From Stylophora pistillata (Eukaryota): a stretch of 64,000 nt of DNA. Under the pieces are notes generated by a model, which saw only the letters and a list, made by a program, of their open reading frames with translations, was not told where the DNA came from and did not search any database. The first letter of the stretch is position 1; each line of letters opens with the position of its first letter. The translations under genes were made by a program, and so were the position numbers. Location of the stretch: NCBI RefSeq assembly GCF_002571385.2, contig NW_019217854.1, forward strand, positions 243,134 to 307,133. Direction: 5' to 3'. Of the stretch, positions 42,946-53,077 are shown piece by piece.

Positions 42946-43650
42946 TTAACATGAAATAAAGGTCCGCTTTCTCTTGGAGAAGTCTTTCAAAACATCTTGT
43001 CGAATTTTCCAGTATGTTGGACAGCCCTCGCCATAAGATGCAACCTGGAACCTTCCTCTGCGAGATTTGAGCCTCAGAAAATAAACTCCAGCAGACATTC
43101 CACTAAAATCTCTGTATTCCAAGTGGTATGTGCAAACGTATTTCTCTAGGTCCATATCGTAAACAATGAAGAAATACAGCTTGACCGCTATGTCATTTTC
43201 TCGCTCCTGCAACGGCTCTGGTTTTAGGTATTGTCCAACTTTGATGGTAAACCGGTTAAGCGAAATCTCTTCTCTCGTGAAAAACGTCACGTTCAGAGAG
43301 CTAAAGACACCCTCTCCCCAAACGTAATAAAGTTCTACGATAGCATCGGCTATTTCATCAGCCTCGGTAAATTTATTCTCCGAAGCCAAGCGAGACATTT
43401 CTGAAGTAGCCATGCCGAACATTGAGTTCATAGTATCAATGGCCGTCGAATTTGGGAAGTGGTTTTGTTCTTTCGGCCAGGAGAGAGCTTCCTCGAAGGC
43501 TGACAGGATTTCGTCGAGTGCCTCATCTCGGTAAAATTTTTCTTCGTCGTCTTCAACATCGGAATCTACGAAAACCCAATCGTCTAAGCATCCACCTCGA
43601 CGGAAGAGAGTTGTCTTATCCTTACACATACATGACCAACAGTGACCCAT
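42946..43650 (-). CDS. Uncharacterised intronless protein, paralog A (234 aa, starts MGHCWSC)
   Basis: Long ORF whose motifs align with paralogs B and C (FTRE, GQYLKP, YHLE, YGEGCPTYWKIRQD). First ATG at 43650. Confidence 0.8.
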   Translation of the reverse strand: MGHCWSCMCKDKTTLFRRGGCLDDWVFVDSDVEDDEEKFYRDEALDEILSAFEEALSWPKEQNHFPNSTAIDTMNSMFGMATSEMSRLASENKFTEADEIADAIVELYYVWGEGVFSSLNVTFFTREEISLNRFTIKVGQYLKPEPLQERENDIAVKLYFFIVYDMDLEKYVCTYHLEYRDFSGMSAGVYFLRLKSRRGRFQVASYGEGCPTYWKIRQDVLKDFSKRKRTFISC

Positions 43651-45175
43651 GTCAGACAGAACGTTTCCTTGTCGCAGCAAAAGTAAAACGACTGAAGTTC
43701 ATTCACAAATTCTGCTCCTGCCCGGTGTTGCTTCTAAAATTGATTGTCTTGGTCTTCAGCTCGTAGCCTCGTGGGAACATGAAGTGATGCAAATGAAATT
43801 ATCTGACTGTGTTGTTGGGTTAAATAATTTTTCCATGCACCAGTCACGTTTTGAATGCTTACAAAGTCAAGTTTATTTACGCGATAGTCCAAGGTACAAG
43901 AAGGTCAATCAATGGCATCCGCCCGGAAACAGGGCAAGCTCAGCATGAAAATATCTGCTTCGGTCACGAAAACAACATGGTATGCGTGGAGATATTGTCT
44001 CTAAAATTGTTCTTAATTACGCGTTACATTCCTATCTTAAATAACATTATATCTTAAGTCTTTTCGAGTAAGATAAATAGATCGGAACTCCAATTTTCAA
44101 GAAAAATTCCAATCTGCGTGTTTTGAGAGAAAAAGGAAAAAAGAAACTTCTAGCTTTAAGGGGATTTCGGGGTTATTTTTTATTCCTGGTTTTATTTTTT
44201 GAGTATAACAACAGATCTTACTTTTACCACGTAACTGCCTGTTTAAGTAAAAAGGAAAATATTTTATAAAAGCGCACAGTGCTTTTATATTATGTGGAGT
44301 TTGGACTCCGCCGGATAAGGATAAATATAACTACGCAAATTAAATTATCACTTGAAATTTTGTTTCGGTGAGAAAACAGACACATACAGACTGTTCAGGA
44401 AGCCCCGAACAACCAGATCCTAAAACATCTCCCCTTTGCTTAAAATATAAATATTTCCGACCTCATTGTTGCACTATTAGCAAAAACGACTGGCAGCCAA
44501 AGTTAAATTCTTACTTTTTGCCAATGGTCTAATGCGGTTCGAGATACCTGTCGGTGTTTCTTACAAAAAGGTTTAGAATAGCCTTTTCACAGAAAATTGT
44601 TTTTTTTCAGTAACGAAACTTTTTTTGAAACTTTACAGATCACGAAGAAGATGCAAAAGTGTAATGTAAAACATGGCCGTTTTAGTCATCACTGCTTTGG
44701 GGCAAAGAACAGGCAAAATAGTCTTGCCCTGTTGTAAAAACCCGCATTGATTACGTATTTCATCTTAAGCCTACGATTTTAATTTGTCATGCGATTATTC
44801 TTATCTACCCCAGGGACATCCTTTTGCTTCTCTGAAGGCTACGGCCGACACTGATGACCTAAACGTGTAGCTCATGACGTATAATGAACGTAAACGTGTA
44901 AGGGTGTTGTGTTACAAAGACGCAATTCACTGCTGTTTGTGTGGTTATTTTTAGTGAAAGATTGTTTTTGAGAAGTGCTTTGTGAAAAATTAAACGGACG
45001 TGAGTGACAAACAAAGCGGAAGTGTGGTGTTACAACCTAGTATTGACAAAGATGATTTGATTAAAGTTAACCAGGACTTGACTGCATTATAGTGGAGGGG
45101 GACAGGGGGGCGGGAGCCCGGGAGAACAAGGAGCGGGAGAGGGAGAGAAGCGGGAGACTCCGACCCCCTTCCCCC

Positions 45176-45477
45176 NNNNNNNNNNNNNNNNNNNNNNNNN
45201 NNNNNNNNNNNNNNNNNNNNNNNNNNNNNNNNNNNNNNNNNNNNNNNNNNNNNNNNNNNNNNNNNNNNNNNNNNNNNNNNNNNNNNNNNNNNNNNNNNNN
45301 NNNNNNNNNNNNNNNNNNNNNNNNNNNNNNNNNNNNNNNNNNNNNNNNNNNNNNNNNNNNNNNNNNNNNNNNNNNNNNNNNNNNNNNNNNNNNNNNNNNN
45401 NNNNNNNNNNNNNNNNNNNNNNNNNNNNNNNNNNNNNNNNNNNNNNNNNNNNNNNNNNNNNNNNNNNNNNNNNNNNN
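45176..45477. other. Assembly gap
   Basis: Run of N. Confidence 1.
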
Positions 45478-51800: not shown

Positions 51801-52270
51801 GAAACTTTTCTCACAGAATTAAGAATTTTTATGTATGTATGCATCTTCAGGACTTTTCGCATTGTTCTTGTGATCCACTCTGCAAATAAAGTTTTCGTAA
51901 CTCCTAGATAAAGTTCTTAAAGCTTTACTGTGAGTTATGTCGTGTAAATAACTACAGTATACTGCATTACGGTACTAACTCTTATTGCAAGTGTTGCACT
52001 CATTTGCAGTTTATATTTACACCAACGATTTAACTGTGCCAATAGAAAATGAAAGCTCAAGGGACTTTTGAGCCATTGTATTTTCGTTTTGGTTGTTAAG
52101 ACGCATATTTGCATTTCCTTTCCTTAATTCATTTTACGCAACGAGTCGTATCAAGCTTCCTTGTGTATGCCATAACGCAATACGACGTGACGCTGGAAAT
52201 TGGCGTATGAATTTCGATCGGGTGTGTTCTACTTACGAAAACTGAAAACCTTGTGTTTATTAATGAAGAG

Positions 52271-53077
52271 ATGGGTTGCTTTCCCACCAAAGAATGCTAC
52301 CAGTGGTCCGCAGATAACGATCTAGATCTGGACATAACTCCGTTGCTAAACGAAAGTTCGAAATCAGAGGGCTATGTACAGGATCATCAGGAAATGTCAA
52401 CAGATCGTGACCGGGAAATTGATGACATTGATCCAAAATTGGAAACCCTTTTACTAAAACTTGAACATGCTCAAGGTTTGAGAGAGAACATTCGCCGATG
52501 TACATCCAACACAGAACTTGAAAACTACCGATTAAAGGTCATCGGTGTTTTAAATGCCGCTACAATTGAAATGAGTCGCATGTCGATGGCTCATAAACAA
52601 ATTGACGCGGAAAGAGTTGTAAAGGAAATTATGCGACTGAGAAGTGTTCTTGGAGACAGATTTTTCGAAGATGCAAGAATCAACGCTTTTGGAAGAGAGA
52701 TCTCTCAGATAGGACCTTTCCTTCTGACGGGAGGGCAATATTTTAAGCCCGTGATGGTAAACGAAGACGATGACACAATTGTTAAACTTTTTTTCTTTGT
52801 CATTTCGCACGCGGAAACGACGCAAGTGTTATTTCGCTATTATCTCGAGCATGCAAGTTTTCTGGATGAATACTTTGCTCTGGGTCTTGTTACTTCCGAA
52901 GGACATACTCAAGTGGAAATCTATGGCAGCTCATGTCCACCGTATTGGAAAATTCGACAAGATGTTATAAACGATGCGACAAAAAGACTCCAGTCTCGTT
53001 TTGAGGATTCAAACCAGAACGAATTGGAGATGGAAAGCTCTGGCGAGTATGATAATCTCTCCAACTCGTTATTTTAA
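52271..53077 (+). CDS. Uncharacterised intronless protein, paralog C (268 aa, starts MGCFPT)
   Basis: FGRE, GQYFKP, YYLE, GHTQV..YGSSCPPYWKIRQD. First ATG at 52271. Confidence 0.82.
   Translation: MGCFPTKECYQWSADNDLDLDITPLLNESSKSEGYVQDHQEMSTDRDREIDDIDPKLETLLLKLEHAQGLRENIRRCTSNTELENYRLKVIGVLNAATIEMSRMSMAHKQIDAERVVKEIMRLRSVLGDRFFEDARINAFGREISQIGPFLLTGGQYFKPVMVNEDDDTIVKLFFFVISHAETTQVLFRYYLEHASFLDEYFALGLVTSEGHTQVEIYGSSCPPYWKIRQDVINDATKRLQSRFEDSNQNELEMESSGEYDNLSNSLF

Follow-up and report, generated by a model that had tools for sequence, protein, structure and literature searches.

The combination of an acylated N-terminus with a short sorting motif is a known means of placing a protein at a membrane. 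Proteins that pair myristate with a basic patch tend to locate to the plasma membrane, Atg8 proteins are bound by W-x-x-[LIV] motifs of acidic character, and the Ragulator scaffold LAMTOR1 is an extended helical chain. Here, we analysed a 64,000-nucleotide stretch of the genome of the coral Stylophora pistillata (assembly GCF_002571385.2, contig NW_019217854.1, positions 243,134 to 307,133 of the forward strand; hereafter the window, numbered from its first letter), which carries three intronless paralogous genes, A, B and C, of a family without a named member. We propose, with a probability of roughly 0.55, that A, B and C are functional and encode lipid-anchored adaptors or binding modules with three different membrane addresses. 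A precedent for such an arrangement is LAMTOR1 (p18), the first 39 residues of which, with their myristoylation, palmitoylation and acidic dileucine signals, suffice to target fusion proteins to the cytosolic surface of lysosomes (PMC7039192).

The protein encoded by C and many family members from eukaryotes other than cnidarians resemble LAMTOR1 in combining Met-Gly-Cys, Ser/Thr6 and an acidic dileucine within ~25 residues (PMC7039192), and C fits the predicted LAMTOR1-like targeting pattern, namely an acylation-type start followed by [DE]xxxL[LI] within ~40 residues. However, homology does not extend past the signal, no LAMTOR Pfam family is matched, and the body of the coral protein is a 195-residue helix-sheet-helix domain. 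The second likeness is to the Src homology 4 (SH4) type of N-terminus found in Src-family kinases and G-alpha proteins: all three coral proteins have Gly2 and Ser/Thr6, C has Cys3, and the A orthogroup has Cys4/5/7/9. The domain behind the signal, however, bears no relation to kinases or to G proteins, and acylation is here a prediction from sequence. A, B and C thus do not appear to be members of the LAMTOR1, Src or capping-protein families (the last is considered below), because sequence tests of membership were negative or inconclusive. The features of the locus are as follows.

42946..43650, minus strand: coding sequence of paralog A, a single exon of 234 amino acids (aa) plus stop, from the list of open reading frames (ORFs)
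43621..43650, minus strand: N-terminus of A, MGHCWSCMCK, a candidate site of myristoylation and multiple palmitoylation (Gly2, Ser6, Cys string)
43567..43584, minus strand: A residues 23-28, DDWVFV, resembling an LC3-interacting region (LIR) and followed by an acidic run
42961..43527, minus strand: A copy of the common globular domain, residues ~42-230, aligning to B residues 50-232
48130..48864, minus strand: coding sequence of paralog B, a single exon of 244 aa plus stop, from the ORF list and collinear polyA RNA contigs
48835..48864, minus strand: N-terminus of B, MGSCPSRSKR, a consensus N-myristoylation site (Gly2, Ser6, basic residues after)
48715..48741, minus strand: B residues 42-50, QLTNVCLED, a linker motif recognised by its conservation in orthologs
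48136..48723, minus strand: B copy of the common globular domain, residues 48-243, as delimited by the AlphaFold2 model
47700..48894, minus strand: B mRNA as seen in polyA RNA-seq contigs, with a 5' untranslated region (UTR) of at least 30 nt and a 3' UTR of at least 430 nt
52271..53077, plus strand: coding sequence of paralog C, a single exon of 268 aa plus stop, from the ORF list and collinear cDNA and RNA contigs
52271..52300, plus strand: N-terminus of C, MGCFPTKECY, a putative dual acylation motif of the Src/G-alpha type (Gly2, Cys3, Thr6)
52331..52348, plus strand: C residues 21-26, DITPLL, an acidic dileucine of the form [DE]xxxL[LI]
52430..53023, plus strand: C copy of the common globular domain, residues ~54-251, from alignments
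52157..53418, plus strand: C mRNA, unspliced, with a 114-nt 5' UTR and a polyA site near 53418, from Logan cDNA contigs (L004, L005)

As judged from their sequences, A, B and C are true paralogs. In BLASTP comparisons, A and B are 33% identical across 187 aa (E 8e-33), B and C 36% across 135 aa (E 3e-32), and A and C 35% across 155 aa (E 2e-27); the alignment of all three contains 42 invariant columns, including the motifs GQY..P, Y.LE and YG..CP.YW..R.D. An earlier note on this DNA had placed three homologous single-exon ORFs at these coordinates and on these strands, which the ORF list, BLASTP and the alignment all bear out. It had also described a collinear common domain of ~150 aa; the collinearity and the invariant motifs are seen, but the length has to be revised, the ordered homologous region being ~195 aa and beginning at a conserved helix, L..LL.KLE.A..W (B residues 48-243). 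Profile searches of the 398-Mb assembly, with profiles built from the coral trio and from 60 rows of the wider family, recovered A, B and C as its only copies of the domain. The assembly gap at 45176-45477 is intergenic, 1.5 kb upstream of the A start codon and 2.65 kb downstream of the B stop codon, and overlaps none of the three ORFs; the listed ORFs that span it are translations of N. No fourth homolog occupies the spacer between A and B in Pocillopora or Oculina.

The RNA evidence covers B and C, both of which are transcribed without splicing. Their 5' UTRs are short, at least 30 nt long in B and 114 nt long in C. For C, two public cDNA contigs, one of them with a polyA tail and adapter, are collinear with 52157-53418 at 99.2% identity, and RNA-seq contigs span 52159 to ~53330 without joints. 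For B, contigs from two polyA RNA-seq runs span 47700-48894, again without joints and with 30 nt ahead of the ATG. Stranded raw reads, although few, agree, placing B on the minus and C on the plus strand. The flank of B at 49058-50415 is silent in RNA, as is the intergenic DNA apart from one repeat.

The start codons of the three genes are supported as well. Each ATG is in a context with a purine at -3 (A in B, G in C) and G at +4, and the Met-Gly start is kept in 68 of 69 orthologs overall (B 24/24, C 22/23, A 22/22). The upstream extensions that gene callers have added to some orthologs share no similarity with each other. The Met-Gly starts that the earlier note relied on are real as well as conserved: the RNA 5' ends and the upstream stops leave B and C without room for upstream coding exons, and in A the reading frame is interrupted by a TGA 17 codons ahead of the ATG. 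The 5' UTR of C (52157-52270) contains three further ATGs, of which those at 52166 and 52207 open short upstream ORFs and the third, at 52263, overlaps the main start in another frame; they could exert translational control.

The repeat mentioned above is an interspersed element of ~230 bp at 51329-51560, between B and C. A first look yielded 1228 candidate copies genome-wide, those scored being 92-94% identical, and RNA reads cover it to a depth in the thousands and leave many loose ends. Rfam contains no match to it, and it looks like a SINE- or MITE-like element (short interspersed nuclear element; miniature inverted-repeat transposable element) carried in many transcripts.

All three genes have orthologs across stony corals, with identities of 55-91% for A, 57-86% for B and 52-99% for C; if one near-identical C product (99%) is set aside, the range for all three is 52-91%. 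Named sources are Pocillopora damicornis (91% for A, the closest named match), Oculina patagonica and Desmophyllum pertusum; an exact look-up of the A product in public assemblies gave no match. The gene order C-B-A is retained in Pocillopora and B-A in Oculina. The ratio of nonsynonymous to synonymous substitution rates (dN/dS, Nei-Gojobori) is 0.154 for A and 0.236 for B relative to Pocillopora, and ~0.09-0.10 relative to Oculina, a comparison in which dS has reached saturation. Each paralog forms its own clade in a quick maximum-likelihood tree, with support of 96-99 in the Shimodaira-Hasegawa-like approximate likelihood ratio test (SH-aLRT), and each of these clades has more distant sister sequences, all within a cnidarian clade of support 100. 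Collectively, the orthologs across corals, the kept gene order, the low dN/dS and the separate clades indicate that the ~30% identity of the paralogs goes back to an ancient triplication, with purifying selection acting on the copies. Consequently, the earlier note was right to regard the family as old and selectively maintained (dN/dS 0.09-0.24, orthologs across Scleractinia, conserved gene order), but its description of the genes as fast-diverging does not hold, given that low paralog identity goes back to the triplication and that each paralog sits in its own supported clade.

One ortholog departs from this pattern of intact genes. The C ortholog of P. damicornis on RCHS01001420.1 (L010:2017-2816), annotated as a gene of 161 aa, matches in two pieces, with a change of reading frame between them at residue 158; either the assembly contains a frameshift or the copy is broken. 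Another assembly has an intact C product (P0026) of 84% identity.

The same data bear on two readings of the locus that differ from ours. The three ORFs might be derived from a transposon or a virus, or be non-functional ORFs arising by chance, for which their lack of introns and the nearby repeats, including the 230-bp element between B and C, could be invoked. However, neither the trio nor 60 family members contain a transposase, reverse transcriptase, integrase, capsid or viral Pfam domain, the three copies occupy a locus that is syntenic in three coral genera, dN/dS is well below 1, and B and C give rise to polyadenylated transcripts. Domain scan, synteny, dN/dS and transcripts together refute this idea, to which we attach almost no credence. 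The earlier note had further suggested that genes of this kind are often effectors of immunity, symbiosis or stress. A fast-evolving, lineage-specific effector cluster would agree with intronless, clustered and unnamed genes, and with the presence of a copy in a few Endozoicomonadaceae, a family of coral- and sponge-associated bacteria. Against it, the genes are under purifying selection, and their stony coral orthologs share 52-91% identity; the genome holds just three copies, without a lineage-specific expansion; and the family extends far beyond corals. Nothing in the sequence, conservation and transcription evidence considered here points to an effector role, and we consider this reading improbable.

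What distinguishes the three paralogs from each other is the N-terminal 30-50 residues, which are strongly conserved within each coral orthogroup and different between orthogroups. The observation in the earlier note that the N-termini are unrelated between paralogs therefore stands, with the addition that each is a conserved element of its own orthogroup. In the window proteins, the Cys near the start is at position 4 in A, 4 in B and 3 in C. The start of A is of the type MGHCCSCVCK, with Gly2, Ser6 and four Cys (MGHCCSC-type in 22/22 orthologs), and its linker carries DDWV[YF][VI]D, in which a LIR-like W-x-x-[VI] stands behind acidic residues and ahead of an acidic run; the wider pattern [DE][DE][WFY]xx[LIV] is found in 20/22 A, 0/24 B and 1/22 C orthologs. 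B starts with MGS[CS]PS[RK], a textbook myristoylation consensus, in all 24 of its orthologs, and its linker motif ELTNVCLE[DE] is kept in 70-100% of them. C starts with MGCFP[ST][KR] (MGC in 22/23 orthologs), and an acidic dileucine, D.TPLL, lies in its acidic linker in 21/22 orthologs, as opposed to 0/24 for B and 1/22 for A. The mean net charge of residues 7-45 is -8.0 in A, +3.2 in B and -6.2 in C.

When assessed with a simple heuristic rather than a trained predictor (a small or uncharged residue 3, Ser/Thr or another small residue 6, no Pro 7), the myristoylation rule is followed by 24/24 B and 17/22 C orthologs, whereas A has Ser6 but His3 in 22/22. A Cys close to Gly2 is present in 22/22 A and 22/22 C orthologs but in only 11/24 of those of B, even though the window copy of B has Cys4. 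The dual acylation signal that the earlier note had read in all three proteins is accordingly a conserved trait of A and C; most coral B proteins would instead combine myristate with a basic patch.

We picture each paralog as a three-part protein: a putative Met-Gly acylation signal with Ser/Thr6, to which A and C add Cys; a disordered linker of 40-55 aa with a short, paralog-specific motif that may serve in sorting; and a globular domain of ~195 aa. The N-terminus would be myristoylated and, in A and C, additionally S-palmitoylated, holding the protein on the cytosolic face of a membrane, and the linker motif would then pick the membrane for each paralog. For C, the acidic dileucine may confer adaptor protein (AP)-dependent sorting to late endosomes and lysosomes, comparable to the N-terminus of LAMTOR1. 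B, which resembles Src and MARCKS in joining a myristoylation consensus to a basic linker (+3.2), would be expected at the plasma membrane. In A, the Cys string, the LIR-like DDWVYVD and the acidic cluster could lead to Golgi/endosomal or autophagic membranes; that DDWVFV acts as an Atg8-binding motif is something we infer from its sequence. The common domain would be a binding module displayed at these membranes, perhaps through the strand residues R134, K164, R181, Y182, E185 and Y217 (B numbering).

The fold of the domain was predicted with AlphaFold2, for the whole of B from an alignment of 51 rows and for the sheet and C-terminal helix alone from one of 76 rows. The mean predicted local distance difference test (pLDDT) score is 83.8 for the whole model and 95.4 for the sheet and helix alone. 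In the whole model, residues 1-47 are disordered (pLDDT ~50), helices 48-63, 76-98 and 102-119 form a three-helix bundle, and six consecutive antiparallel strands at 131-211 are followed by a long helix, 217-243. The conserved linker motif of B falls on the border of the N-terminal part that was modelled with low confidence. The counterpart of the A linker region likewise has low pLDDT, the B model serving as a proxy for the LIR core of A. Positions conserved family-wide are F132, R134, Q148, F150, P152, K164, F168, R181, Y182, L184, E185, L196, P215 and Y217, which, as placed by the model, correspond to the hydrophobic core and to basic, acidic and aromatic residues on strands. Among them, R134 is conserved in 98% of bacterial and eukaryotic sequences, K164 in 88%, R181 in 77%, Y182 in 95%, E185 in 93% and Y217 in 95%. 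An obvious catalytic nucleophile is absent, no Ser, Cys, His or Asp being invariant among the conserved family positions.

The earlier note had recognised no named domain, and neither did we: Pfam, PDB sequence profiles and fold searches all lack a convincing match. The Pfam search gave no match for the trio, for ten distant members or for 60 rows of the family alignment (A3); for the trio, this means that A and B returned no row up to an E of 1 and that C returned two rows at chance level. Searches of PDB sequences with profiles from two alignments (A2, A3) returned chance-level rows only, the ESM Atlas offered no usable match for the domain, and Foldseek found nothing in the PDB at E <= 0.001 with either the whole model or the sheet-plus-helix model. 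In VIA-align searches, the whole model retrieved only generic three-helix bundles, with spectrin repeats reaching Z 8.8, and the sheet part retrieved the plasmid protein PsiB (Z 6.0) and the actin capping protein subunits CapZ alpha/beta (Z 5.2-6.0, 100-112 of 123 residues, root-mean-square deviation (rmsd) 4.0-4.7 A). For comparison, a Z of 7-8 is common for unrelated models searched in this way. The family is thus absent from Pfam and the PDB, and a literature search with six family accessions found no paper.

The CapZ match raises the question of whether the domain could be a distant relative of capping protein that forms a sheet-mediated dimer and regulates actin at membranes. CapZ and PsiB share with our model an antiparallel sheet with a long C-terminal helix across one face, CapZ gives the widest coverage of the sheet-plus-helix model, with up to 112 of 123 residues superposed, and a three-helix stalk also opens the capping protein subunits. 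Nevertheless, there is no sequence signal: no capping-protein Pfam family is matched and identity in the alignments is 3-7%. CapZ also ties with PsiB at Z 6.0, below the level usual for unrelated models, the N-terminal helical bundle does not superpose along with the sheet in the whole-model search, and Foldseek probabilities are low. In our view, the similarity to PsiB and CapZ is within search noise and does not amount to a fold assignment; capping protein is a weak lead, and a relationship to it seems to us improbable.

Beyond corals, a profile search against 1.84 billion cluster representatives recovered 87 clusters at E <= 0.001, of which 70 at E <= 1e-10. Other cnidarian members include the uncharacterised protein A7SW16 of Nematostella vectensis. 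Among 18 non-cnidarian eukaryotic members, 14 have a Met-Gly start, 12 a nearby Cys and 8 a strict acidic dileucine; they form a clade, and their contigs are eukaryote-like, being either of Mb scale with spectrin exons or compact, gene-dense and derived from metagenomes. In one single-ORF protein of this clade (P0112; L018:8001-9653), a RING finger, a B-box and a coiled coil precede the domain, which is thereby placed where TRIM proteins carry their target-recognition domain. Another non-cnidarian eukaryotic member, P0154 (413 aa), lies on compact, gene-dense contigs of GC content 0.47 from several metagenomes (L022-L026), where its neighbours, a Kelch protein of 687 aa and a pyridoxal phosphate (PLP)-dependent decarboxylase of 568 aa, are single ORFs.

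Bacterial members fall into two kinds. Those from a delta-proteobacterial metagenome-assembled genome (MAG), Rudaea and Casimicrobiaceae have signal peptides, which together with low-complexity linkers make up the N-terminal parts of this kind. A search for TPR repeats in 60 family members and in four additional weak hits found none. Of 24 such proteins, 8 have a strict lipobox, and in several others a Cys follows the hydrophobic stretch. A lipobox-like Cys thus accompanies many of the signal peptides, and a lipid tether for the domain is probable in bacteria as well. The likeness to bacterial lipoproteins has its limit in the anchor itself, which would be a diacylglyceryl-Cys outside the cytoplasm in bacteria and N-myristoyl-Gly with S-palmitoyl-Cys on the cytosolic face in the coral proteins. 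Predicted membrane-tethering signals hence recur across the family, in bacteria as well as eukaryotes. The gene neighbourhoods at two bacterial loci (L006, L008) revealed no common context.

The second kind is found in Endozoicomonadaceae, with proteins from Parendozoicomonas callyspongiae and an Endozoicomonas MAG; only 3 of 63 species genomes of the family carry a copy. These copies lack a signal peptide and have an N-terminal extension of 200-250 aa with motifs resembling the ubiquitin-interacting motif (UIM). One Endozoicomonadaceae genome (G034; L021:90-2331) encodes a 408-aa family ORF with the UIM-like EDLQRAIAESIKES, which adjoins a transposase-like ORF. In P. callyspongiae, the domain copy (L008:5269-6687) is followed 3 kb downstream by an ORF of 572 aa (L008:9910-11628) with a C3HC4 RING finger of eukaryotic type, so that two eukaryote-like proteins stand side by side. 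In a free tree, obtained by a quick search, the Endozoicomonadaceae copies join the eukaryotic clade with SH-aLRT 98. However, the approximately unbiased (AU) test does not reject a single clade of all bacterial rows (log-likelihood difference 6.9, p 0.32); because of this, transfer between Endozoicomonadaceae and eukaryotes is possible but not shown, and we claim no direction.

The RING/B-box fusion and the UIM-like extensions may point to a role of the domain in ubiquitin-linked or endomembrane sorting. One could instead suppose that the proteins are lipid-anchored, as we propose, and that the domain binds or processes a small anionic ligand or a lipid head group, and that the lipoprotein members in bacteria have the same role. 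Basic, aromatic and acidic strand residues (from R134 at 98% to R181 at 77%) are indeed the polar positions conserved best, and a predicted tether beside the membrane is kept in both domains of life. Yet none of the invariant positions offers a Ser, Cys, His or Asp nucleophile, the fold searches retrieved neither a lipid-binding fold nor an enzyme fold of known type, and the RING/B-box fusion puts the domain at the target-recognition position of TRIM proteins. We regard a ligand-centred function as a minority possibility.

Several observations weigh against our proposal of lipid-anchored adaptors. The His3 of A is not a classic residue of N-myristoyltransferase substrates, and the Cys4 of B is lost in 13 of 24 orthologs. 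Motifs as short as the LIR-like and dileucine ones can arise by chance in acidic linkers; the sole argument for their function is that they are conserved within their orthogroups. The UIM matches score 15-16.5 bits, below the Pfam cut-off of 21. Finally, as the domain has no recognisable relative, the notion of a binding module draws on the domain fusions and on the absence of an obvious catalytic set.

In a broader and decidedly speculative extension of the adaptor proposal, the domain would be an ancient membrane-tethered module common to bacteria and animals, anchored by a lipobox in the former and by Met-Gly acylation in the latter, which cnidarians triplicated and provided with three addresses. 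At a similarly low level of confidence, these addresses might be lysosomal or symbiosome-like membranes, the plasma membrane, and autophagic or Golgi membranes, and the Endozoicomonadaceae copy, which lacks a signal peptide, carries UIM-like motifs and resembles the eukaryotic clade, could be a mimic that disturbs endolysosomal or ubiquitin-dependent sorting in the host.

The remainder of the window contains other coding pieces. Two large ORFs at 8194-10761 (minus strand) match the OB-folds of shieldin subunit 2 (SHLD2_OB1, E 2.5e-43; SHLD2_C, E 1e-12) and represent an SHLD2-like gene in a coral. In addition, there are a core-2/I-branching glycosyltransferase at 5188-6360 (plus strand), a rhodopsin-type G protein-coupled receptor at 20507-21511 (minus strand), an ankyrin-repeat exon at 31831-32499 (plus strand) and a reverse-transcriptase fragment at 1716-2519 (minus strand).

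While the targeting principle proposed here is a known one, its cargo is not, being a domain without a Pfam family, a solved relative or a named member, which is conserved from bacteria to animals and nearly always predicted to lie beside a membrane. Should the domain prove ordinary, this uncharacterised family will still have gained a defined boundary, a confident structural model and a set of conserved residues. The coral trio amounts to a natural experiment, in which one module bears three conserved address labels, and its function is testable by localisation. If C is indeed addressed to late endosomes or lysosomes, it would be a candidate resident of the coral symbiosome membrane, and the patchy occurrence of a related copy in Endozoicomonadaceae may provide a second route from this family into the biology of host-microbe associations.

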